Assembly (NCBI GenBank): GCA_002269645.1
Contig: NIVC01002140.1
Coordinates: 62,001-126,000 of the forward strand
Length of the DNA: 64,000 nucleotides
Direction of reading: 5' to 3'
Source: Macrostomum lignano
Taxonomy: Eukaryota
The number at the start of each line of letters is the position of its first letter. Positions within the stretch are counted from its first letter, which is position 1. Positions 12,644-55,870 of this stretch are shown here, piece by piece. Made by a program: the position numbers and the translations under genes. The notes under the pieces were generated by a model that had not been told where the DNA came from, made no database searches, and saw only the letters and a list, made by a program, of their open reading frames with translations.

Positions 12644-15600
12644 GGGGATGTCAACTTAAGCACCAGAATGGAGCCCGAAGTTCAGCTCCGGCCCAAACCG
12701 ACTGCAATCGATAACTTGTCGGCCCAGACGACTAGAATCGCCGAGACATCCCATCCGGCTCCCTTCCTTGGGGTCCCAGGGGATAAAGGGGATAAAATGG
12801 GGATCTCATGTCAACTTAAGGCTCTGGAATGGAGCCCGAAGTTCAGCTCCGGCCCAAACCGACTGCAATCGATAACTTGTCGGCCCAGACGACTAGAATC
12901 GCCGAGACATCCCATCCGGCTCCCTTCCTTGGGGTCCCAGGGGATAAAGGGGATAAAATAAGGATCTCATGTCAACTTAAGGCTCTGGAATGGAGCCCGA
13001 AGTTCAGCTCCGGTCCAAACCGACTGCAATCGATAACTTGTCGGCCCAGACGACTAGAATCGCCGAGACATCCCATCCGGCTCCCTTCCTTGGGGTCCCA
13101 GGGGATAAAGGGGATAAAATGGGGATCTCATGTCAACTTAAGCACCAGAATGGAGCCCGAAGTTCAGCTCCGGCCCAAACCGACTGCAATCGATAACTTG
13201 TCGGCCCAGACGACTAGAATCGCCGAGACATCCCATCCGGCTCCCTTCCTTGGGGTCCCAGGGGATAAAGGGGATAAAATGGGGATCTCATGTCAACTTA
13301 AGGCTCTGGAATGGAGCCCGAAGTTCAGCTCCGGTCCAAACCGACTGCAATCGATAACTTGTCGGCCCAGACGACTAGAATCGCCGAGACATCCCATCCG
13401 GCTCCCTTCCTTGGGGTCCCAGGGGATAAAGGGGATAAAATGGGGATCTCATGTCAACTTAAGGCTCTGGAATGGAGCCCGAAGTTCAGCTCCGGCCCAA
13501 ACCGACTGCAATCGATAACTTGTCGGCCCAGACGACTAGAATCGCCGAGACATCCCATCCGGCTCCCTTCCTTGGGGTCCCAGGGGATAAAGGGGATAAA
13601 ATGGGGATCTCATGTCAACTTAAGGCTCTGGAATGGAGCCCGAAGTTCAGCTCCGGCCCAAACCGACTGCAATCGATAACTTGTCGGCCCAGACGACTAG
13701 AATCGCCGAGACATCCCATCCGGCTCCCTTCCTTGGGGTCCCAGGGGATAAAGGGGATAAAATGGGGATCTCATGTCAACTTAAGGCTCTGGAATGGAGC
13801 CCGAAGTTCAGCTCCGGCCCAAACCGACTGCAATCGATAACTTGTCGGCCCAGACGACTAGAATCGCCGAGACATCCCATCCGGCTCCCTTCCTTGGGGT
13901 CCCAGGGGATAAAGGGGATAAAATGGGGATCTCATGTCAACTTAAGGCTCTGGAATGGAGCCCGAAGTTCAGCTCCGGCCCAAACCGACTGCAATCGATA
14001 ACTTGTCGGCCCAGACGACTAGAATCGCCGAGACATCCCATCCGGCTCCCTTCCTTGGGGTCCCAGGGGATAAAGGGGATAAAATGGGGATCTCATGTCA
14101 ACTTAAGCACCAGAATGGAGCCCGAAGTTCAGCTCCGGCCCAAACCGACTGCAATCGATAACTTGTCGGCCCAGACGACTAGAATCGCCGAGACATCCCA
14201 TCCGGCTCCCTTCCTTGGGGTCCCAGGGGATAAAGGGGATAAAATGGGGATCTCATGTCAACTTAAGGCTCTGGAATGGAGCCCGAAGTTCAGCTCCGGT
14301 CCAAACCGACTGCAATCGATAACTTGTCGGCCCAGACGACTAGAATCGCCGAGACATCCCATCCGGCTCCCTTCCTTGGGGTCCCAGGGGATAAAGGGGA
14401 TAAAATGGGGATCTCATGTCAACTTAAGCACCAGAATGGAGCCCGAAGTTCAGCTCCGGCCCAAACCGACTGCAATCGATAACTTGTCGGCCCAGACGAC
14501 TAGAATCGCCGAGACATCCCATCCGGCTCCCTTCCTTGGGGTCCCAGGGGATAAAGGGGATAAAATGGGGATCTCATGTCAACTTAAGGCTCTGGAATGG
14601 AGCCCGAAGTTCAGCTCCGGCCCAAACCGACTGCAATCGATAACTTGTCGGCCCAGACGACTAGAATCGCCGAGACATCCCATCCGGCTCCCTTCCTTGG
14701 GGTCCCAGGGGATAAAGGGGATAAAATGGGGATCTCATGTCAACTTAAGCACCAGAATGGAGCCCGAAGTTCAGCTCCGGCCCAAACCGACTGCAATCGA
14801 TAACTTGTCGGCCCAGACGACTAGAATCGCCGAGACATCCCATCCGGCTCCCTTCCTTGGGGTCCCAGGGGATAAAGGGGATAAAATGGGGATCTCATGT
14901 CAACTTAAGGCTCTGGAATGGAGCCCGAAGTTCAGCTCCGGTCCAAACCGACTGCAATCGATAACTTGTCGGCCCAGACGACTAGAATCGCCGAGACATC
15001 CCATCCGGCTCCCTTCCTTGGGGTCCCAGGGGATAAAGGGGATAAAATGGGGATCTCATGTCAACTTAAGGCTCTGGAATGGAGCCCGAAGTTCAGCTCC
15101 GGTCCAAACCGACTGCAATCGATAACTTGTCGGCCCAGACGACTAGAATCGCCGAGACATCCCATCCGGCTCCCTTCCTTGGGGTCCCAGGGGATAAAGG
15201 GGATAAAATGGGGATCTCATGTCAACTTAAGGCTCTGGAATGGAGCCCGAAGTTCAGCTCCGGTCCAAACCGACTGCAATCGATAACTTGTCGGCCCAGA
15301 CGACTAGAATCGCCGAGACATCCCATCCGGCTCCCTTCCTTGGGGTCCCAGGGGATAAAGGGGATAAAATGGGGATCTCATGTCAACTTAAGGCTCTGGA
15401 ATGGAGCCCGAAGTTCAGCTCCGGTCCAAACCGACTGCAATCGATAACTTGTCGGCCCAGACGACTAGAATCGCCGAGACATCCCATCCGGCTCCCTTCC
15501 TTGGGGTCCCAGGGGATAAAGGGGATAAAATGGGGATCTCATGTCAACTTAAGGCTCTGGAATGGAGCCCGAAGTTCAGCTCCGGTCCAAACCGACTGCA

Positions 15601-15652
15601 ATCGATAACTTGTCGGCCCAGACGACTAGAATCGCCGAGATATCCCATCCGG
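12644..15652 (+). repeat. 161/160-bp tandem array (~18.7 units) forming the left TIR
   Basis: Unit starts (atggagcccgaag) fall at 12668, 12829, 12990, 13150, 13311 ... 15562. There are two junction variants, ttaaggctctggaatgg (161 bp) and ttaagcaccagaatgg (160 bp). Confidence 0.97.
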
Positions 15653-16337
15653 TTTCAAGTGACGAAGCTCTATTCAATTCGAATATCGCATTGGCGGGTG
15701 TATTTTATTTCAGCTATTATACATTGATTGTTAAGTAATAAAAATGATTTGCTCGTATCGAAACAGTGTTAAAAATGCCGATCTGGAAACTCAGTTTGAA
15801 AAAATTAACTGGTAAATTCATTTGGTTATTAGTAAGCAGAACTTTTGACGATAAACCGAAACTATGTATATTGGTAAAATAAAGAATATCACGCAAGGCT
15901 GTACAAGTTATGACGTAATGGATACAAAGCATATCATGAAAAGCTGTACAAGGAATCAAAGTAATAAAAACAAAGCATGTCATGCAAAGCAGCACACGTT
16001 TTTAAGCAAATAAAGTAACGCCTCTCACGCATAGCTTAGTAAAATCATAATTGCAAAAGTTTCTCAGTCCTAAGAAACGGTTTTTGGGTTTAAGTTCTTT
16101 GCTTCAGTAAAAAATACTTCCAATTTTTAGCTAATTGTGAGTCTAAAAGAAATTGAAAGAACTAATGCAAAGCTTTTGTTATTTGATGTCAGTCTGAATT
16201 ATCTTCACATGTAACCTATGGTACGTAAAGAATGCGTGAGATGACATTGTTTCTTAATCTGCATGTCCTTTAAAATCTGCAATACAAAACGTACAGTACA
16301 CTCGCTTAAAACAATTGTATTTTCGCTAAAAATGCTT

Positions 16338-17156
16338 TTACGAGTTTAAAAGTGCAACGAGCACGATGCACTCAGGCTCACGTACGAACGGGTTATAGTC
16401 TGACGTAACTTTCAGGTCGTCAATTCTCGTCCACACACAGCTCAGTACGCTTGCTGTGAAATGTCCCGATTTCAGTCGGTTTCCATGGTGTGATATTGTG
16501 GCCACTGGCTTACCAAGTGTAGAAACACCCCCTGACCTTGAAGAAAAGCTTACAGGAGTTTGAAGCTTAAGGTGGCCATCCATACTAGCACGATCAAGAT
16601 AAATCAGGGTAAACTTTCCAGGTGTTACTACGATCTCTTGATTACAATCGCCCAGGCAATTGGCGTCCGAATATTTCACTACTTGAGGAGCGACAAAAGC
16701 GCAGAAGATTTTGTCTAAACTGACAATTGAGCGCTCAAATTGACAGAGAGGAATGCAAATCACTCTGTTATCGATTGTGCCAACAGGAACTTCAGCACTT
16801 GTGCGCTGGCAATCTCGACAAGTTTGAATGAGTGAAAATTCTGTGAAAGCATCTGATGACAGAAATTCCAGATGTATTAGAAGCGTTTGAACAAATTCGT
16901 TGACGCAATGGTGCTGATTTGTTTGAAATGAATCTGGATGTTGCAACCGAACTGCAGCTAACAGTGGAGTGACTGTTGCAGACCGCTGTTGCATCTCCGT
17001 CAGAAGACGAAGCAGCTCTCGATGGACTTGGTCGTTGCTAGTCTTTTTTAAAATGCATCCATTAGAATGCAGGCAGAGAAACACTTGCACTGCTGCATTT
17101 GCGTAGCACTGCAGGCCATTATTTGGCAACCCAAATAACTTCTTCGGCGAATTCAA
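16338..17156 (-). CDS. Compact ubiquitin-specific protease (peptidase C19/USP) catalytic domain
   Basis: Cys box GLPNNGLQCYANAAVQ, QHHCVNEF box, CxxC pairs (CRDC, CLGDC), His box ATISHHGNRLKSGHF and WTRIDD. All three triad residues are present. There is no ATG of its own; the frame continues upstream to a TAG at 17196-17198. Confidence 0.82.
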   Translation of the reverse strand: MNSPKKLFGLPNNGLQCYANAAVQVFLCLHSNGCILKKTSNDQVHRELLRLLTEMQQRSATVTPLLAAVRLQHPDSFQTNQHHCVNEFVQTLLIHLEFLSSDAFTEFSLIQTCRDCQRTSAEVPVGTIDNRVICIPLCQFERSIVSLDKIFCAFVAPQVVKYSDANCLGDCNQEIVVTPGKFTLIYLDRASMDGHLKLQTPVSFSSRSGGVSTLGKPVATISHHGNRLKSGHFTASVLSCVWTRIDDLKVTSDYNPFVREPECIVLVALLNS

Positions 17157-17195
17157 TGAACCAGTAGCATTTGAACTGTGCCTCTGTTCATCTTG

Positions 17196-17845
17196 CTACG
17201 ATTCAGCACTGTCTCTGCGAGGTGCATTTGGAGCTGGATGACCACCAGATTGATCATTGTAAAGATTGGCAATCAGTACTTTTGGCAAAGCACTGTCAAT
17301 AAATCGGAAGCTGCTGCTGCACATGTTGTAGCTTTCGGGGTGATATGCATAACAGCCTAGCATTCTAACCACAGCCATAACATGACTGTCACACCCTGCT
17401 GTCCTGCTTCCGGCCTTTGAGGATGAAAAGTAGCCATGCAGACGCAGCAGCCCGAGTCACGAAATCCGAATCGGTTACCGCTTGCAGTTTCGCAAATACG
17501 AAGGGCAACTCGGTAAGTTTTTGACCGATGACGGGAATGAAGAACGGCTAAATATATCCAAGATGGCCTCCATTCTCCAAACTTACTGCTCCACCCCTTT
17601 GGTGGCGCTCGCTGATGAAACTTCCAGCATTTTAAATGGCTTGGCAGTTCAGAAATCAACAATTCGAAATCGCGCCACGAGTCTCCAGCGTAGCTACTGA
17701 GCACCTCATGAACTCTGACGTTTTCGATGTAGCGTTTTGACTGAAGAACGTGGTATGGGCCGATGCTAAGCTCTTCCAGATTTCTTTCGTCAACGCTGGG
17801 GAACCCTGAACTTTCAGGGTCCAGGGGATCCACTGCTGTCCATTT
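17196..17845 (-). pseudogene. C-terminal remnant of an ISL2EU/Spy-like transposase (SWIM-like region)
   Basis: WTAVDPLDPESSGFPSVDERNLEELSIGPYHVLQSKRYI ... LHSRHRSKTYRV, then after a frameshift near 17450 HGYFSSSKAGSRTAGCDSHVMAVVRMLG. As recalled, this resembles the FP-L-E / SRH / WYCxCKxGxRxxGCCxH pattern of ISL2EU-type transposase C-termini, with CxC changed to SxS. The DDE core is missing. Confidence 0.6.
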
Positions 17846-19122
17846 TATCCCCTTTATCCCCTGGGACCCCAAGGAAGGGAGCCGGATGGGATGTCTCGGC
17901 GATTCTAGTCGTCTGGGCCGACAAGTTATCGATTGCAGTCGGTTTGGGCCGGAGCTGAACTTCGGGCTCCATTCCAGAGCCTTAAGTTGACATGAGATCC
18001 CCATTTTATCCCCTTTATCCCCTGGGACCCCAAGGAAGGAAGCCGGATGGGATGTCTCGGCGATTCTAGTCGTCTGGGCCGACAAGTTATCGATTGCAGT
18101 CGGTTTGGGCCGGAGCTGAACTTCGAGCTCCATTCTAGAGCCTTAAGTTGACATGAGATCCCCATTTTATCCCCTTTATCCCCTGGGACCCCAAGGAAGG
18201 GAGCCGGATGGGATGTCTCGGCGATTCTAGTCGTCTTGGCCGACAAGTTATCGATTGCAGTCGGTTTGGGCCGGAGCTGAACTTCGGGCTCCATTCCAGA
18301 GCCTTAAGTTGACATGAGATCCCCATTTTATCCCCTTTATCCCCTGGGACCCCAAGGAAGGGAGCCGGATGGGATGTCTCGGCGATTCTAGTCGTCTGGG
18401 CCGACAAGTTATCGATTGCAGTCGGTTTGGGCCGGAGCTGAACTTCGAGCTCCATTCTAGAGCCTTAAGTTGACATGAGATCCCCATTTTATCCCCTTTA
18501 TCCCCTGGGACCCCAAGGAAGGGAGCCGGATGGGATGTCTCGGCGATTCTAGTCGTCTGGGCCGACAAGTTATCGATTGCAGTCGGTTTGGACCGGAGCT
18601 GAACTTCGGGCTCCATTCCAGAGCCTTAAGTTGACATGAGATCCCCATTTTATCCCCTTTATCCCCTGGGACCCCAAGGAAGGGAGCCGGATGGGATGTC
18701 TCGGCGATTCTAGTCGTCTGGGCCGACAAGTTATCGATTGCAGTCGGTTTGGGCCGGAGCTGAACTTCGGGCTCCATTCTAGAGCCTTAAGTTGACATGA
18801 GATCCCCATTTTATCCCCTTTATCCCCTGGGACCCAAGGAAGGGAGCCGGATGGGATGTCTCGGCGATTCTAGTCGTCTTGGCCGACAAGTTATCGATTG
18901 CAGTCGGTTTGGACCGGAGCTGAACTTCGGGCTCCATTCCAGAGCCTTAAGTTGACATGAGATCCCCATTTTATCCCCTTTATCCCCTGGGACCCCAAGG
19001 AAGGGAGCCGGATGGGATGTCTCGGCGATTCTAGTCGTCTGGGCCGACAAGTTATCGATTGCAGTCGGTTTGGTCCGCAGCTGAACTTCGGGCTCCATTC
19101 TGGTGCTTAAGTTGACATCCCC
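17840..19122 (-). repeat. 161-bp tandem array (~8 units) forming the right TIR, inverted relative to the left array
   Basis: It is the reverse complement of the left-array unit and ends in ...GACATCCCC at 19122. Confidence 0.97.
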
Positions 19123-19221
19123 TTTAAGATTTGTTTAATAAATAGTAGTTAGATTAATATAACACTAAAAAGACATTAATAACACCAAATATTATAAAAA
19201 ATAAATATCAACATCGTTACA

Positions 19222-19234
19222 CTCGCCTCTCCTC
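19222..19234 (-). promoter_or_regulatory. Polypurine tract of the Gypsy element
   Basis: The minus strand reads GAGGAGAGGCGAG immediately before TGTAACGATG of the 3' LTR. Confidence 0.8.
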
Positions 19235-19374
19235 AAAAAAACAATACAGCTACTTACAGTAACATCAAAGCACATAACCCAAAAATTTAATAACAATATA
19301 AACTTATATATTGGCTATCGACGGAATTTAAATTATAGGCTCAATTGGCCCGGAAAGTTGGCAACAGCAAATCG

Positions 19375-19810
19375 ACACCATTGGCAAAAATCGACACCAT
19401 TGGCAAAAATTGACACCATTGGCAAAAATCGAACGCATTGGCAAAATCGAACACATTGGCAAAATCGAACACATTGGCAAAAATCGAAAACATTGGCAAA
19501 ATCGAACACATTGGCAAAAATCGAACACATTGGCAAAAATCGAACACATTGGCAAAAATCGAACACATTGGCAAAAATCGAACACATTGGCAAAAATCGA
19601 ACACATTGGCAAAAATCGAACACATTGGCAAAAATCGAACACATTGGCTAAAATCGAACACATTGGCAAAAATCGAACACATTGGCAAAAATCGAACACA
19701 TTGGCAAAAATCGAACACATTGGCAAAAATCGAACACATTGGCTAAAATCGAACACATTGGCAAAAATCGAACACATTGGCAAAAATCGAACACATTGAC
19801 AAAAATCGAA
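19375..19810. repeat. 19-20-bp minisatellite (AAAAATCGAACACATTGGCA)n, ~22 units, in the Gypsy 3' UTR
   Basis: Read directly from the sequence. It explains the repetitive ORFs at 19328-19867. Confidence 0.95.
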
Positions 19811-33169: not shown

Positions 33170-33476
33170 AAATTAATGTGACGCGACCCTTCTTGTTCGG
33201 TGCTGACAGCTATGCACTTATCAATAAATGAGTCTATGTAGCAAGAAAGTTTAAAATTTAACTTCGACTGATTGTATGTCGTATTATATTATTTATTTGA
33301 AGACAGGAGTTATAGCGAACAACCACGCTGCGGGCCAACCAAAACACAGCACGCACGAGACCAAACAGGAAAAAACTAGAGAGCGAGTCTAGCGCGCAAA
33401 AATGCGATATAACAGTCTTTTAAATAATCCTCGTATTTCCATGAATGGTACAGTAAAACAAATTTTACGTATAAAT

Positions 33477-47104: not shown

Positions 47105-47316
47105 TTTTTTTCACCCACAAAAATGGTCCGACCGGGCGTAGCTTGGTTGGGTGTTAAACCAGTGGGGCGTGGCTCTTGTGCGTTGGTGCGGGGGGGGGGG
47201 GGTGGGCCGGGCCTTGGTCACGTGCCCGCGGCCTGGGTGGCGTTTATTTAATACGGTGCGGGCTGTCGCTGACCCGCCTGCAAGCGCGTATTGATTTTTT
47301 TTCTCATTTTTTTGCA

Positions 47317-48435
47317 ATGGCTGACCGCGACAAACTTATGCACCTGAGCAAGGTGGCTCTGCAAGCCTTGTGTGCCCACGCTAACATAAGCAGTCGGGGC
47401 AACAAGGCCGACCTTGTCAGCGCCCTGCTCGCAGCCCCAGACCAGTCGTGGACAGATTCGCTGTTGCAGAACATGGAGCAATCTAAGCAAGAAGCCGAAG
47501 CAGATGACAACATCAGTACGGAGGCGGCTCGGGAGTCGGCGGCGGGCCTGGACGAGGACATCGCGAAAGCGGAGAAGGAGATCAGACTGTTGCAACTACG
47601 CAAGGAAGCCGCTCAACTCAAGAGGGAGATCGGAGATCTGCAGCGCGAGTGTCCATCCACGCGTCCTATGAATCGCGGTGAGTGTGCCAAGCCTGCTGGC
47701 CCCAGTTACTTTCCTGATGGGTGTGATGATGCTGGATTAGACCAAGCAGATAATGGCAATGAGCTGCTTGACAGATTGTTGTCACAGAACAGGGCCAATG
47801 AACGGATGGAGTGTTCTGGTAGACGTAAGGCTCTCCTGATTCGTGATTTCCTCGACGGCTTTGAGCAGGAAGTGGTGCTGGCTAATGGTTCTGGTGGCCG
47901 AATCACTTACAAGAGCAGAAAACCTAATCCAGATAGCATCACGGCAGCGCAGTATTTGGTAGGAAATTGCAGGCTGATGATGCAGATGATCAAGGATGGT
48001 GCCCTGGTGACTAGTAGAAATGGAACTGCCGACACGACTGATTTGATGAATTACTTACGCTACTCAATACAGATTGGCGAGCTGTTTGACGCGGGCTTCG
48101 GCCTTGCGCAGGTGAATCGTTTTGACGAGGACTACCGCACTAGGCAAGCTGAAACTGGCATGCGATGGGGCAAGGAGTCTTTCCAACTCGTTGCTAAGCA
48201 CTTAATCAGAACTGGAACTCCAGCAAACCATGGAGTCAGCAAGTCATTGCCCCAGCCACGGCAGCAGCGTTTTCAAAAACCAATAGACCCCAAGAGCCTC
48301 AGAACGCCAGACGGGGAAGAGATCTGCTTGCACTTTAATCGCCGGGGGTGCTTCCGGTCGAGCTGCAAATTCCGGCACGTATGCCGCATCTGTTTCGAGG
48401 CCCACCCTGAGGCCAACCATTCGACAAAAAACTGA
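47317..48435 (+). CDS. gag: Ngaro ORF1 (Gag-like): N-terminal SAP-like motif, coiled coil, C-terminal Cys/His zinc finger
   Basis: LMHLSKVALQALCAHANISSRGNKADLVSALL; ICLHFNRRGCFRSSCKFRHVCRICFEAH. Confidence 0.85.
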   Translation: MADRDKLMHLSKVALQALCAHANISSRGNKADLVSALLAAPDQSWTDSLLQNMEQSKQEAEADDNISTEAARESAAGLDEDIAKAEKEIRLLQLRKEAAQLKREIGDLQRECPSTRPMNRGECAKPAGPSYFPDGCDDAGLDQADNGNELLDRLLSQNRANERMECSGRRKALLIRDFLDGFEQEVVLANGSGGRITYKSRKPNPDSITAAQYLVGNCRLMMQMIKDGALVTSRNGTADTTDLMNYLRYSIQIGELFDAGFGLAQVNRFDEDYRTRQAETGMRWGKESFQLVAKHLIRTGTPANHGVSKSLPQPRQQRFQKPIDPKSLRTPDGEEICLHFNRRGCFRSSCKFRHVCRICFEAHPEANHSTKN

Positions 48436-48443
48436 AGTCTGCG

Positions 48444-50230
48444 ATGCTCTGTTTTAATCCTAAAATTTTGCCTAATGCTCAGCCTGCTTTAAATTTTAAC
48501 AATCCTGTCGTTGGCAGTGCAGGGGGTCGCCTGCGTTTTTGTTCGTGGGATTCTGAGCTTGAGAATGACCCTGATCGGAATTTTATCCTAGACGGCATCG
48601 CAAATGGTTTTCGCATTACTGATGGCAAAGGGCTTTGTGAGACTTTTAATGCCAATTACATGTCTACTTCTGCTTTTCATCGCGCTGTTGAGTTGCAAAT
48701 TAAGGAAGAGATTGAGAATGGCAGGTATTTGATTGTGCCTAAGAAGCCTACGATGGTCAGCCCTCTGGGAGCAATTCCCAAGGATAACGGGAAGGTTCGA
48801 CTTATTCATGACTGCAGCACGCCTCCGGGCTACTCGGTAAATGACAACTATACGAAGAAGCTGAGCCCCAGGTTTGAGTCCGTCAAGAAGGTTGCAGCCT
48901 CTATCGGCAAGGGCTGGTTCATGGCTAAGCTTGACTTGTCGCAAGCTTACAGAAGCGTGGCGATCCATCCGGATGATTACCAGGCGACCGGCATTGGTTG
49001 GCGCTTTAAAGGCAACCGTGATCTGACATGGCTTGTCGACACCCGGCTACCCTTTGGTAGCTGCGCCTCGGTCGAGATTTTCTACCGGCTTACTCAAGCG
49101 GTCAAGAGGATGATGGTGCGACGCGGCGTGGCCAATATTTCGGTTTACCTGGATGATTTTCTGGTTGCGGCCGAGAGCGAGAAAGAGTGTATGGATGCTC
49201 TGAAAGAGCTGATTAAGCTGGTTCGCCAGTTAGGTTTTGGTGTCAATTGGAACAAAGTGGTTGAACCTACGCAATGCTTGGTGTATCTCGGTGTGAAGAT
49301 TGATACTGTCCGTGGAGTTCTTAGTGTGCCGGCGGAAAAGTGTGAGGAAATGCGCACCACACTGCTTAACTTTTCGCAGCGCAGGCGTCTCTCGAAACGA
49401 CAGCTTTCGTCGCTTTGGTGGTGCACGCTGGGAGTTGCTTCCTAAGACCCCTGTTCGACCTGCTTAATGCCCTGGAAAAGCCACATCACAAAGTGCGTGT
49501 GTCCGCTGACACTGTGCGTATTTTACTCTGGTGGCGAGGTGCCCTTCTGAAGCTGCCTGATTTTCAGCTTTGGAGAAGTTGCACAAACGGCTGGATCATC
49601 GAAACCGATGCGAGCAGTGCTGGTGGCGGAGCCATTTTGCGCAATGGTAGCGGTATGGTGGATTGGCTGTACGTCAATTGGGATCTGGATGCTGGAGGAA
49701 AGTTTAAAGACAAGCATATCACGTACAAAGAAGCTATTGTTCCGCTGCTGGCTATGGTTCGCTGGGGTGCCTTTTTAAATGACAGTTCGGTCGTGGTCTA
49801 CTCCGACTCTAGTGCGGCTGTTGGCATGATTAACAGAGGTTGCTGTCGGCAGCCTGAGTTGCAGCCGCTGTTCCAGACTGCCATGCTCATTGCTGTTAGG
49901 CGTGGGGTTGAGGTGCGCGCTTTTCATGTGCCTGGCTGGTACCATGTCTTTGCGGACCCGTGCTCTAGGCTGCACGCCGTGGACAAAATGCGCGATTTTT
50001 TATTTCGGGTGTATGGCTCTGTTGACTGCTGTTTTAACGAGATCGCTAGCCATGCTTTCTGCCCTGCTGCCTCCGTTTTTCTCATTTTACAGGCCCTCCG
50101 CGCCAGACTCCCGACCGCCTCAGCAAGCGTTGCGCGTTTATCCTGGGCAATGCCTACGCGCCCCGCACGAAGCGGAGTTACCGGTCGCAGCTCGCGTCTT
50201 GGCTGCGATTTTGCAATTCCCGGCACCTGA
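48444..50230 (+). pseudogene. pol: Ngaro RT-RNase H, frameshifted near 49420
   Basis: KVRLIHDCS, KLDLSQAYRSV, RLPFG, YLDD; ETDASSAGGG, YKEAIV, YSDSSAAV, FADPCSR. The usual GKL-W segment between QLSSL and VVHAG is missing. Confidence 0.9.
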
Positions 50231-51093
50231 CGCCGCTGCGGGCAGAGCCTGTGCACGTGGCTGAATACCTGGCCGAGCTGTCCACCCGGCTGTCAGCCTT
50301 TCGGAGTTGCCAGGCGTATGCTAACGCGGTCTCGCTGTACTTCAGAGCTCTCGGCCGGTCGGACCCGTGCGAGTCGCCGATGGTTAAGCTGGTGCTTCGT
50401 GGTCTTCGCCGGTGTCTCAGTCGGCAGCAGCGCTCAAGGGAGCCATTCAGAGTCGCGGATCTCCTCAAGCTACACGCCCACCTGGACCAACGTCTGAAGA
50501 GTGACATCGCGTTCTGGGCAGCAGTTCTGGCAGCCTGGTGGGGTATGCTGCGAAAAGCGAATGTGACGACGCAATCGGGGCAGCTCGATCTGTGGTGCGA
50601 CCTGGCAGCATCGAGCATCGTCTTTTCAGAGTACGACTGTGAGCTCACTGTGCGGCATTCGAAGACCAACCAGTTTGGCGATCGAGTTCAGCGAGTGTTT
50701 CTTCCGAAACTGCCTGATGGAAGCTTGGGTGTCCTGTGCCCGTTCCGTGCGCTCGAGCGGCAGCTACGGACAAACCGAATCGGCCAGGCGCCGCGTCCGG
50801 TTCACCTGTTCTCCACGTGGTCGTCCGCGGGATGGTTGCCTCTGACGGCTAGCAGGTTTGATAGCCGGCTTCGTTCGCTCTGCACATCGGCGGGTTTGTC
50901 GCCACGCGAGTTCACTGGCCACGGGCTGCGGCGGGGCGGCGCTACGGCAGCCATGCAGCTCGGTGTTCCACTGCCGATGATCAAGAAGCTGGGCGACTGG
51001 AAGGGCAACTCAGTGTTTCGCTATCTATCTGTTCGGGACTCGGATGCCAGGGCGGCTGTGCATGGCTTGGCTCGTCGGGTTGGCGCGCTCTAA
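50093..51093 (+). CDS. Ngaro tyrosine recombinase (open frame without initiator ATG; predicted second exon)
   Basis: AYAPRTKRSYRSQLASWLRFC, then R..K..GHGLRRG..LGDW..Y motifs. A pyrimidine tract + CAG ends at 50092. Confidence 0.85.
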
Positions 51094-51525: not shown

Positions 51526-52812
51526 TTAAACTTTACTGGATGAATTGTTGATCATGCTAAGCTTCACCTTCCTCTCAAATGCATAGATAATGTACAGGTC
51601 CACGGGTGTTGCGGTAGTCCTCTCAATGTTAGTCACGATATTCACAGGGCTGTTATCAGTAGGCATTTGTCTGGCAGACACATCAGCGCCAAACATCGGA
51701 TATAGAGTTCCATATTGAAGAGCAGTGATAGCCATTCCATTGTTCTCTTTCACAGCCAAGCCGACCAACTCGCTATAAAATTTGCTAATCTTGTTCTGAC
51801 TGAAATCTCCATTTTGTGGCAGTGCAGGGTAAAGATTATCACTGATTTCATGCTGGATGGACCGCACGTCTCCATGTATGTAGCGTATAATGCTATTTGG
51901 GTTTCTCATGTTAATAATAATATACCTTGGATTGCTGCATGATCCCTCTTTAATGCAGATGTTTGTTCTAGTTTCGTTTCGCTCATCTCGACACATGTAG
52001 GCTGTGTATGCAACATCAATGTCCTTCTCTATTGCCTTAAGATAGTCTGCTTTTAGTGCAGTCTTTGGCTCAATGATTTCCAAATACAACTCGATTCCGG
52101 TTAGCTTCACCTCCATCCTAGTGTGATCCGCCCCAGTCCACAACGCTCTACTGCGATCATCTCTAGTCATCTTAAAAGTGTCGCTAAAGTTACTAGTCAG
52201 TCGATTAAATGTATTACAGAATCCACTCATGAATCTTAGTGGTACAAATACATCAACAGACCGATACAGCGGGTTTTTAGCAGCATCATCAGCACCTTGT
52301 AATGCATAGTTGTATCTCTTCTTCCTCTTTTTATAGCCACTGTCATTGATGTCTCCTTCTTTTTCATCTGCAATAAAACCCGCACCACTTCCCAACTGAA
52401 TAAAATCAGGATTCTCAATCAAACAATGAGCGTCATAGACAATTCCAAAGCTGGCGATTCGCTCCAACTCAGTGCTCCCATTCGATACACTAAACTCCTT
52501 GAACATGTACGCCCAAAAGTTACTGATCAGAGCCACATCCGCATCATGCTTGTCAACGTTAGCACGAGCCGCATCCACACCACCCTTTGTCTTGAATTGA
52601 AATGTCATATGGAAGCCGCTCTTAAGACTGTGCACACTAACCAGAGACGAACATCCATTGTATGTAAATGTCAGTGTTTGACCTGGACCCAAATTAGTTT
52701 CATTCTGGTTCTCGTGACTCGGAACTCTTACCTGAGTCGCTTTGATTGTGCTATCATCACTCAAAATAGGCTTGTTAATTTTGTAGAAAACTGGTGTCAG
52801 TGGGTCGTTCAT
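51526..52812 (-). CDS. Major capsid protein (hexon-like, double jelly-roll inferred), 428 aa, intact
   Basis: ATG start; DDSTIKATQVRVP..NL..GQTLTFT N-terminus and YGTLYPMFGADVS near the C-terminus resemble Polinton/adintovirus MCPs; size and position next to the penton fit. Confidence 0.72.
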   Translation of the reverse strand: MNDPLTPVFYKINKPILSDDSTIKATQVRVPSHENQNETNLGPGQTLTFTYNGCSSLVSVHSLKSGFHMTFQFKTKGGVDAARANVDKHDADVALISNFWAYMFKEFSVSNGSTELERIASFGIVYDAHCLIENPDFIQLGSGAGFIADEKEGDINDSGYKKRKKRYNYALQGADDAAKNPLYRSVDVFVPLRFMSGFCNTFNRLTSNFSDTFKMTRDDRSRALWTGADHTRMEVKLTGIELYLEIIEPKTALKADYLKAIEKDIDVAYTAYMCRDERNETRTNICIKEGSCSNPRYIIINMRNPNSIIRYIHGDVRSIQHEISDNLYPALPQNGDFSQNKISKFYSELVGLAVKENNGMAITALQYGTLYPMFGADVSARQMPTDNSPVNIVTNIERTTATPVDLYIIYAFERKVKLSMINNSSSKV

Positions 52813-54869: not shown

Positions 54870-55870
54870 TTAGAGCGCGCCAACCCGACGAGCCAAGCCA
54901 TGCACAGCCGCCCTGGCATCCGAGTCCCGAACAGATAGATAGCGAAACACTGAGTTGCCCTTCCAGTCGCCCAGCTTCTTGATCATCGGCAGTGGAACAC
55001 CGAGCTGCATGGCTGCCGTAGCGCCGCCCCGCCGCAGCCCGTGGCCAGTGAACTCGCGTGGCGACAAACCCGCCGATGTGCAGAGCGAACGAAGCCGGCT
55101 ATCAAACCTGCTAGCCGTCAGAGGCAACCATCCCGCGGACGACCACGTGGAGAACAGGTGAACCGGACGCGGCGCCTGGCCGATTCGGTTTGTCCGTAGC
55201 TGCCGCTCGAGCGCACGGAACGGGCACAGGACACCCAAGCTTCCATCAGGCAGTTTCGGAAGAAACACTCGCTGAACTCGATCGCCAAACTGGTTGGTCT
55301 TCGAATGCCGCACAGTGAGCTCACAGTCGTACTCTGAAAAGACGATGCTCGATGCTGCCAGGTCGCACCACAGATCGAGCTGCCCCGATTGCGTCGTCAC
55401 ATTCGCTTTTCGCAGCATACCCCACCAGGCTGCCAGAACTGCTGCCCAGAACGCGATGTCACTCTTCAGACGTTGGTCCAGGTGGGCGTGTAGCTTGAGG
55501 AGATCCGCGACTCTGAATGGCTCCCTTGAGCGCTGCTGCCGACTGAGACACCGGCGAAGACCACGAAGCACCAGCTTAACCATCGGCGACTCGCACGGGT
55601 CCGACCGGCCGAGAGCTCTGAAGTACAGCGAGACCGCGTTAGCATACGCCTGGCAACTCCGAAAGGCTGACAGCCGGGTGGACAGCTCGGCCAGGTATTC
55701 AGCCACGTGCACAGGCTCTGCCCGCAGCGGCGTCAGGTGCCGGGAATTGCAAAATCGCAGCCAAGACGCGAGCTGCGACCGGTAACTCCGCTTCGTGCGG
55801 GGCGCGTAGGCATTGCCCAGGATAAACGCGCAACGCTTGCTGAGGCGGTCGGGAGTCTGGCGCGGAGGGC
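54870..55870 (-). CDS. Tyrosine recombinase, right-arm copy
   Basis: Mirror of 50093-51093. Confidence 0.85.

Follow-up and report, generated by a model that had tools for sequence, protein, structure and literature searches.

A Spy-like DNA transposon of Macrostomum lignano with subrepeat-built ends, and a ubiquitin-specific protease joined to the transposases of its relatives

Why would a ubiquitin-specific protease (USP) lie between the terminal inverted repeats (TIRs) of a DNA transposon, next to the remains of a transposase and partly in frame with it? The question is raised by positions 12644-19122 of a transposon-rich, 64-kb stretch of an animal genome, that of Macrostomum lignano (contig NIVC01002140.1, positions 62,001 to 126,000; the whole stretch that was analysed is called the window below). 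An earlier note, made from the letters alone, had read this interval as a transposon inserted without a target-site duplication (TSD), in which a PHIS-type transposase remnant and a USP descend from an ancestral fusion protein. Our analysis leads to a similar answer. The interval is very probably a non-autonomous, internally deleted and mutated copy of a Spy-like PHIS transposon of the DDE type, whose autonomous members make a transposase-USP polypeptide.

Insertion at AAATTT without target-site duplication

The element is 6479 bp long and has an exact 17-nt inverted terminus, GGGGATGTCAACTTAAG, at both ends. Within the 64 kb this sequence has exactly two occurrences, one at 12644-12660 (+) and the other at 19106-19122 (-), against a chance expectation of 0.01 matches. 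The ends consist of tandem arrays of a 160/161-bp unit, with 18.7 copies and 98% matches at 12648-15652 and 8.0 copies and 97% matches at 17840-19118. The arm units are 97-99% alike, and the arms are inverted, pairing over up to 946 nt at 99% complementarity. The outermost units at both ends are one and the same 160-bp variant, in which a common short deletion creates the terminus.

The target site could be read from an AT-rich host repeat of ~414 bp, perhaps a MITE or part of some larger element, of which the window holds two copies, 12330-12643 plus 19123-19222 and 33177-33476 plus 35354-35467. We joined 300 bp from each side of the element and matched them against the rest of the window; a paralogous empty site of this kind is the test that defined the Spy elements (PMC4122938). 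The left flank, 12330-12633, is 97.7% identical to 33177-33476 over 304 bp, and the right flank, 19123-19222, is 100% identical to 35368-35467 over 100 bp. The filled site reads ...gaatAAA/element/TTTaagat.... At the empty site, positions 35365-35370, the sequence reads ...atagaatAAATTTaagattt..., ...gaatAAATTTaagat..., ...atagaatAAATTTaagatttg..., and the whole 6479 bp is missing. Since the paralogous copy of the host repeat carries AAATTT uninterrupted, the insertion point lies exactly between AAA and TTT, and no base was duplicated or lost. Locus L004, a relative that comes from a different sample, has the same arrangement at its 5' end, which reads ttAAA/GAGGATGTCAACTTAGG; that is, AAA directly precedes a terminus, GAGGATGTCAACTTAGG, that lies ~800 bp upstream of a transposase open reading frame (ORF). 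The earlier note's TSD-less insertion at AAA/TTT is thus borne out by the empty site, and its repeat-built TIRs are indeed present, with 19 units in the left arm and 8 in the right one.

A piggyBac element, with its TTAA target, was considered and rejected: the left flank is ATAA, and the empty site is without duplication.

Each of the two copies of the host repeat, 98-100% identical, has been hit by a different insertion. The one in copy 2 is 1877 bp long (33477-35353), with the AAATTT site 10 bp away. A duplication of 4 bp, AAAT (33473-33476 and 35354-35357), stands on either side of this insertion, which has the ends TGATGAGGACG...CCGAACCCATCA; no long TIR was found in it, and it contains one 148-aa ORF of no obvious identity.

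Transposase and USP in the window copy and its relatives

The USP reading frame extends from 17195 to 16341 on the minus strand and is closed by TAA at 16340-16338. Its translation matches the Pfam UCH profile PF00443 over profile positions 2-237 of 254, with an E value of 8.6e-11 and 42.4 bits (gathering threshold 23.9). The catalytic triad is intact, as follows: Cys at 17108-17106 (NGLQCYANA), His at 16463-16461 (SGHFTASV) and Asp at 16418-16416 (IDDLKV), within the Cys box GLPNNGLQCYANAAVQ, the His box SHHGNRLKSGHFTASV and the Asp box WTRIDDLKV. In the alignment, the Cys, His and second Asp columns are kept in all USP-bearing relatives. The domain (16338-17195) also has the Cys pairs of a Zn ribbon, CRDC and CLGDC. 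An AlphaFold model built with 16 sequences has a mean local confidence (pLDDT) of 90.8 and a predicted template-modelling score (pTM) of 0.88. When it was compared with the PDB by Foldseek, 372 matches at E ≤ 0.001 were obtained; the best 50 of the 372 are all USP catalytic domains, headed by USP18, USP46, USP2 and USP21 (E ~1e-16, TM scores of 0.67-0.74). A phmmer search of PDB sequences with the USP gave no match at E ≤ 0.01. The linker TAG (Table 1) is followed by no ATG before the catalytic Cys is reached; the frame has its first Met downstream of the Cys box, and the start that the program-made ORF list gives for the USP is TTG.

The remnant next to the USP, 17842-17199, shows homology to DDE transposases in their C-terminal domain; over its first 131 codons the amino acid identity is 65% to protein P0002 of contig L005 and 49% to P0004 of L004. 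This domain, of ~200 aa, is common to relatives with and without a USP. Its predicted structure has a pLDDT of 88.4, and a comparison of the model with the PDB gave no match at E ≤ 0.001 (best E 0.55). The remnant is divided between two frames. The earlier note had placed all of it in the frame of the USP, which is true of the last 84 codons (17450-17199); the first 131 codons are in another frame, separated by a 1-nt deletion at ~17450 that the note did not mention. Its other statements about this region agree with ours, namely the TAG in the context GAA TCG TAG CAA GAT at 17198-17196, and a USP with an intact Cys/His/Asp triad and no start codon of its own.

At its inner end the right arm meets the remnant abruptly, as ...GGGGATAAAATGG joined to ACAGCAGTG..., with TGG common to both sides. 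In L005, WTAVDPLDP... is preceded by the rest of a transposase (...FRYLVECSFAAIKQDKCINERHEPYQW...), and L004 likewise extends upstream of WLPVNALDP into the transposase. Since both relatives extend upstream at the point where the window copy meets a repeat unit, the window copy appears to be a deletion derivative that has lost ~480 upstream codons, those for the zinc finger, the helix-turn-helix (HTH) and the DDE core. To judge from its reading frames, it encodes nothing functional and is a dead, non-autonomous relic.

Relatives were obtained by an exhaustive HMMER search over 1.84 billion cluster representatives, which gave 40. A word-indexed protein search found no match with the conceptual fusion, two with the relatives' alignment and none with the junction ORF. 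The closest HMMER match is P0002, and P0028 aligns in one HMMER stretch over both remnant and USP (query positions 15-494). Locus L004 comes from JGI sample 3300040801, as does L003. The L004 ORF has a C2H2 finger, HTH_Tnp_4 and a DDE core, spans the remnant region and reaches the linker, interrupted by a single frameshift and by a single TGA in place of a Trp codon; L003 carries the linker of L004 onward into the USP. A search for further copies of the window clade found that all its clusters are singletons; L077 is without the relevant region.

Single intact ORFs with the order HTH_Tnp_4, DDE core, C-terminal domain, linker and UCH are present in P0028 (955 aa), P0079 (1010 aa), P0007 (1048 aa), P0061 (1340 aa) and P0063 (1380 aa). 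Intact members of the P0007 cluster, each 1048-1050 aa long, number at least 11; they are encoded on different contigs, a Tara scaffold among them, and this family has an extra in-frame C2H2 ORF upstream of the transposase-USP ORF. The ancestral transposase-USP fusion that the earlier note had envisaged is accordingly found as continuous ORFs in P0028, the P0007 family, P0079, P0061 and P0063. The profile matches to which it had pointed were also obtained, UCH at 42.4 bits in the window and DDE_Tnp_4 at 32.4 bits in the relative P0012.

The fusion is old. When the window copy and L005 are compared in three segments, the proportions of nonsynonymous and synonymous differences (pN/pS) are 0.22/0.85, 0.36/0.77 and 0.40/0.64. 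Because pS, at 0.64-0.85, is saturated while pN is 0.22-0.40, the two lineages appear to have split long ago and to have evolved under selection. Among diverged copies of the P0007 family, no stop is found in 1048-1050 codons, and the ratio of nonsynonymous to synonymous rates (omega), 0.16 in the transposase part, is 0.43-0.48 in the USP part, the latter a value of ~0.45 derived from ~45 substitutions and weakly below 1. These ratios indicate purifying selection on the USP in that family. When the C-terminal domains were placed on a neighbour-joining tree, the proteins with a USP formed three separated groups, as follows: P0063/P0079/P0028; the window, L005 and the JGI family (99% bootstrap); and P0007, nested among proteins in which no USP was detected. 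The tree may reflect one ancient gain of the USP with subsequent losses, or several gains; it fits either.

The superfamily was assigned through the relatives. HTH_Tnp_4 is found in L074, of the closest subfamily, at 33.5 bits against a cutoff of 27, and also in P0004, P0010, P0061, P0063 and P0079. DDE_Tnp_4 is found in P0012 (32.4 bits, cutoff 24.8) and P0015 (21.8 bits). The alignment of relatives has D.TY, GDGNL and D(R/K)GY blocks and an R-x3-E, to be compared with the published PHIS pattern D...K...D...D...P...R(3)E (PMC4122938). Because of the HTH_Tnp_4 and DDE_Tnp_4 matches, the motif pattern and the behaviour at AAA/TTT, placement of the element in PHIS, as a Spy-like member, is supported by sequence; the relatives, with HTH_Tnp_4, DDE_Tnp_4, GDGNL and R(3)E, also agree with the PHIS-type remnant of the earlier note. 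The features in common with Spy are the precise AAA/TTT insertion without TSD, seen in the window and suggested by the AAA before the 5' end of L004; a single transposase ORF with an N-terminal HTH, seen in the relatives only, where it measures 955-1380 aa; and a DDE core akin to those of PIF/Harbinger and IS5, which is of the DDE_Tnp_4 type in the relatives, the window copy being without the DDE part. Likewise shared are hosts of invertebrate or marine-invertebrate type, a highly variable TIR length and a population of copies that are mostly deletion derivatives.

Several side observations concern the relatives and their ends. A metagenome scan with the terminus GRGGATGTCAACTTARGC gave 68 loci and no relative, in a collection that excludes the sample of L003 and L004. 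About 40 of the 68 loci come from peat metagenomes and are the ends of an IS6-like prokaryotic element (DDE_Tnp_IS240), and the rest resemble chance matches. The IS6-like loci are L007 (395-1000; DDE_Tnp_IS240, 55 bits) and ~40 others among L008-L073. Their terminus, GAGGATGTCAACTTAAGCC, equals the first 17-18 nt of the terminus of the eukaryotic element, from the same starting base; given the size of the collection this is probably a chance match, striking as the coincidence of register is. A scan of viral contigs was empty. Among the distant fusion families, neither L001 nor L075/L076 showed an inverted repeat between the 5' and 3' ends, and the assemblies L078 and L079 break inside a ~101-bp tandem array. 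The P0007 family has ~60-nt subterminal direct repeats and, 3' of the ORF, the ~101-bp tandem array at which assemblies break (L075, 5245-5410 and 5832-6346; L002, 3500-3890). The lineage as a whole may be characterised by repeat-rich ends. Finally, P0005 (UniParc UPI0007A1D47C) is a 2393-aa chimeric gene model that contains the window's 161-bp unit in translation, at 96% amino acid identity. At its residues ~520-780 the repeat unit is joined, at a different breakpoint, to a transposase remnant ~55% identical to that of the window, which suggests that, in one genome or in two that are closely related, internal regions that have diverged carry common arms.

Proposed mechanism and alternative explanations

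We propose the following scheme. The autonomous element would have, at its ends, long foldback-like inverted arms of the 160/161-bp subrepeat capped by the 17-bp terminus. Its polypeptide would begin with a C2H2 finger and/or an HTH_Tnp_4 helix-turn-helix, followed by a DDE core with the spacing D(92-94)D(74-102)E, the ~200-aa C-terminal domain, which bears a Zn-like Cys/His motif, then a linker of low complexity and, last, a compact cysteine protease of the USP type. The window copy would have arisen by a deletion between a repeat unit and the ORF, at the TGG microhomology, that removed everything upstream of the C-terminal domain; the 1-nt deletion and the TAG would have been gained afterwards. 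The transposase of an autonomous relative is expected to bind the termini, and probably also sites repeated in each 160-bp unit. From the established cut-and-paste behaviour of DDE enzymes, it would then excise the element and integrate it at AAATTT. The window copy could be mobile only in trans, through a related transposase acting on its intact termini. The USP, being C-terminal in the same polypeptide, would travel with the transposase to the site of transposition and there remove ubiquitin or a ubiquitin-like modifier. Its likely target is the transposase itself, which would be stabilised, or else chromatin or repair factors at the break.

A number of points weigh against this account. The members of the window clade (window, L003, L004, L005, L074 and L077) are all damaged, and the intact fusion is found only in more distant lineages, in which the omega of the USP has the modest value given above. 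The superfamily assignment comes by way of relatives that are only 25-65% identical, the window copy having no DDE core, and the comparison with Spy, ISL2EU and Harbinger is one of published features rather than a phylogeny with reference sequences. Membership in Spy appears incomplete, since the spacing and the terminus depart from the published elements. In six aligned relatives the catalytic triad has the spacing D(92-94)D(74-102)E, whereas that of Spy is D(79-80)D(44-62)E. The terminus has the form G(G/A)GGATGT, that is, GGGGATGT in the window and GAGGATGT in L004, whereas the Spy terminal consensus is 5'-GGANNNNG-3' (PMC4122938). The TIRs are tandem arrays of subrepeats, whereas the long TIRs reported for Spy are without subrepeat structure. 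Some relatives have C2H2 fingers, whereas most Spy transposases have been reported to be without a zinc finger, and the fused USP of the relatives is a further difference from Spy. As for the protease, its activity and its substrate are predictions from sequence and fold, which favour neither of the two targets over the other.

It is tempting to go further and propose that the USP is an obligatory, anciently acquired part of the transposase, that transposition needs the catalytic Cys and that, in the window clade, recoding, by a +1 shift at a stop codon of the Zn-motif region, by TAG-CAA readthrough or by both, may set the dose of the USP; we regard this stronger version as rather unlikely. 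USP18 is ISG15-specific. Given the structural match to USP18, the stronger version would have either ubiquitin or a ubiquitin-like modifier removed from the transposase or from chromatin or repair factors at the cut site, a suggestion that we make with the same reserve.

The alternative that fares best concerns the expression of the fusion. The three sequenced members of the window clade, the window copy, L004 and L005, all have a frame disruption within one ~66-nt stretch in the Zn-motif region (L004 ~2738-2747, L005 ~757-766, window ~17418-17450). L004 and L005 have 10 nt where the window has 9, with a stop in the 0 frame followed by C (TAA-C and TGA-C); the window copy is in frame at that site and has a different frameshift of its own. 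In the linker, TAG followed by CAA is found in the window (17196-17198) and in L005 (~997-999), and L003/L004, the JGI family, have no stop at this position. In the P0007 family a TAG is kept in three intact copies (L075 ~1942-1944, and the same site in L076 and L002), where it separates a C2H2 ORF of 580-592 aa from the in-frame transposase-USP ORF of 1048 aa. Transposase and USP product might therefore be separated by recoding in the window clade, through TAG-CAA and a +1 change in the Zn-motif region, in which case the USP would appear only when a ribosome now and then reads through or shifts frame, or else as a product of its own. We consider this improbable. In the window and in L005 alike, the conserved ...LY anchor is followed at a distance of 21-22 codons by TAG-CAA; the 10-nt-for-9 state, with its stop and C, is common to L004 and L005 in spite of synonymous saturation; and the TAG of the P0007 family persists in intact copies. 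Set against this, a 42-nt tandem duplication in L005 has the TAG in its first unit and CAG at the same codon in its second, so decay within a Gln-rich linker is simpler. Besides the JGI family without a stop at the TAG and the window copy in frame at the shift site of L004 and L005, there are other defects: L004 has the TGA in place of a Trp codon, L005 has a TGA at position 301, and L003 and L077 have internal deletions. More distant relatives read straight through both regions. Decay is thus the simpler reading of the TAG and the frame changes, because the copies carry other defects and because the TAG of L005 aligns with CAG in the adjacent tandem duplicate. The clustering of the Zn-motif disruptions could be a coincidence, a mutational hot spot or a programmed +1 frameshift.

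Next to be weighed is the origin of the USP. It could be a fragment of a host gene recently captured by a non-autonomous element, by transduplication as in Pack-MULEs, with its in-frame position accidental, and the window copy is indeed non-autonomous and its USP has no start codon. However, the arrangement of C-terminal domain, linker and USP occurs in at least three well-separated lineages with intact ORFs. Moreover, the junction is old, since it is found also in L003/L004 and L005, at 35-65% identity and with synonymous sites saturated. The best USP matches from outside the family are at most 30% identical, with E ≥ 7.7e-8, and all relatives above ~30% are transposon-linked; nor, as said, does phmmer find a USP in the PDB. 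Since the USP has no close cellular relative, these comparisons would exclude the recent capture of a host exon, which the earlier note had named as one of the findings that would overturn its view, and we hold the whole capture scenario to be very unlikely.

Even less can be said for a Mutator-like or Foldback-type transposon, although the arms are of unequal length, foldback-like and made of subrepeats, and a SWIM-like CxC...CxH can be read in some relatives (P0026, WCSC...CAH; P0008, CCSC...CCSH). Foldback-type elements, such as FB of Drosophila and Galileo, belong to the MULE-like and P superfamilies and generate TSDs; their unequal long inverted arms of tandem subrepeats are an architectural likeness only. 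The element has no TSD of 8-11 bp, the empty site showing zero duplication, and at E ≤ 1 no relative has a MULE, DBD_Tnp_Mut or SWIM Pfam match; the relatives have HTH_Tnp_4 and DDE_Tnp_4 instead. The SWIM label of the earlier note is not borne out: Pfam gives it no support in the relatives even at this threshold, and the window clade is without the first Cys pair of CxC...CxH in the homologous frame. An ISL2EU element was also rejected. That group has a 2-bp (AT) TSD, a transposase with a THAP domain and a second ORF with a YqaJ exonuclease domain, whereas the element has zero TSD and no YqaJ or THAP Pfam match is found in the relatives, which carry C2H2/HTH; the THAP of P0005 is ~400 residues upstream of the element-derived part, in a chimeric gene model. 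Least probable of all, to the point of being negligible, is that the interval was never mobile and is a local palindromic rearrangement of a 161-bp satellite enclosing a pseudogene: its arms are satellite-like, with 19 and 8 units, but its outer ends are precise, identical and set apart from internal units by the same short deletion, its 6479 bp are missing from the 98-100% identical paralogous site, the same terminus stands beside a transposase gene in the unrelated sample of L004, and P0005 joins the same repeat unit to a different transposase fragment.

Known systems and the remaining features of the window

Among eukaryotic cut-and-paste transposons, integration without a TSD is known from Spy elements only. 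Their transposases, of ~700 aa, consist only of a DNA-binding and a DDE domain, with no protease reported (PMC4122938, PMC4482050, PMC11304231). Proteases of the ubiquitin family have been described on other transposons. C-terminal OTU or Ulp1 domains are found on Ginger1 and MULE transposases (PMC2836005), which resemble the present case in combining a DDE transposase with a C-terminal cysteine protease of the ubiquitin/SUMO family and in raising the question of how the protease serves transposition; they differ in having a Gypsy-integrase-like or MULE transposase, in having OTU or C48 rather than USP/C19, and in making TSDs. The same paper mentions, in one sentence, a Trichomonas vaginalis protein, XP_001314237.1, with an IS5-like transposase_11 and a peptidase C19 (PMC2836005). 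By its description, this is a USP/C19 with an IS5-related DDE transposase, a prokaryotic-type relative of PHIS; it differs in being a protist protein, and element structure and target site are not described in that paper. Among Helitron-like elements, subgroups c and d of HLE2 have been reported to carry a UCH domain (HELIANO, PMC11417382); here PF00443 is stably carried by another lineage of eukaryotic DNA transposons, one with a rolling-circle Rep/helicase and not a DDE cut-and-paste enzyme. Full-text literature searches for USP or UCH with PHIS, Harbinger or Spy transposases gave nothing beyond the Trichomonas and Helitron-like cases.

Because of the OTU, Ulp1, Helitron UCH and Trichomonas C19 precedents, a transposon-borne USP is not new in kind. 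The combination of a USP, a Spy-like PHIS transposase and foldback-type subrepeat TIRs appears to be undescribed. The earlier note's statement that it knew of no USP/C19 on a PHIS-type transposase thus stands as regards Spy and Harbinger, and has to be qualified by the Trichomonas and Helitron cases. The evidence points to a sister-like lineage of Spy, with the same scarless insertion at AAA/TTT, a different spacing of the catalytic core, foldback-type ends and a transposase-borne USP. That USP is kept intact and in multiple copies in marine metagenomes, including the Tara scaffold. The lineage provides a testable case for the question of why unrelated DNA transposons (Ginger, MULE, Helitron) repeatedly recruit ubiquitin-family proteases, and its intact relatives, of 1048-1380 aa, are ready-made transposase-USP constructs. 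One Spy element, cgSpy, is under development as a gene-transfer tool (PMC11304231).

The coordinates of the element and its parts are collected in Table 1. The presumed 3' untranslated region (UTR) also contains a 45-bp repeat, with 2.5 copies at 15876-15990.

Table 1. Parts of the element and of its target site, in window positions
Feature	Position	Strand	Remarks
Host AAA half of the AAATTT target	12641-12643	+	Directly left of the element; marked by the empty site as host, not TIR
Left terminus, GGGGATGTCAACTTAAG	12644-12660	+	Exact inverted copy of the right terminus; unique to both ends
Left arm, 3' side of the gene	12644-15652	.	19 tandem 160/161-bp units; innermost unit ends at ...CATCCCATCCGG
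AT-rich unique region 3' of the USP stop, presumed 3' UTR	15653-16337	-	Without other copy in the window
USP (peptidase C19) domain, 285 codons + TAA	16338-17195	-	Predicted from Pfam, motifs and predicted fold
In-frame TAG in the low-complexity linker between transposase tail and USP	17196-17198	-	Context GAA TCG TAG CAA GAT
Transposase tail in the frame of the USP, 84 codons	17199-17450	-	...SSSKAGSRTAGCDSHVMAVV... (CxH half of the Zn-like motif); conserved ...D..LP..L..LY end
Frameshift, 1-nt deletion in a G run	~17450	-	Relative to L004 and L005
First 131 codons of the transposase C-terminal domain (WTAVDPLDP...NRFGFRDSG)	17450-17842	-	In another frame than the tail
Internal-deletion junction	17840-17842	-	Repeat unit ...GGGGATAAAATGG joined to the ORF at the Trp codon of WTAVDP
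Right arm, 5' side of the gene	17840-19122	.	8 inverted tandem units; terminus at 19106-19122
Host TTT half of the target	19123-19125	+	Read beside the element; confirmed by the empty site
Paralogous empty site	35365-35370	+	AAATTT unbroken in host-repeat copy 2

The surroundings of the element are rich in other repeats. A 19-bp satellite (AAATCGAACACATTGGCAA), with 23 copies and 96% matches, occupies 19369-19810, 250 bp to the right of the element. The window also holds LTR-retrotransposon pol, pieces of Maverick-like polB and capsid genes, and reverse transcriptases. A large inverted duplication, 47176-51093 (+) and 54870-58811 (-), contains retroelement-like ORFs, among them a SAP-domain ORF and an RVT_1 reverse transcriptase; between its arms, the ORF 51526-52812 has a weak match to double-jelly-roll capsid proteins. 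Lastly, two long single-exon ORFs, 6330-8474 (-) and 39023-41050 (-), match AIG1(GIMAP)/septin-like GTPases, one of them with additional stonustoxin-helical and fn3 matches, and are probably members of an expanded host family of immune-type GTPases.

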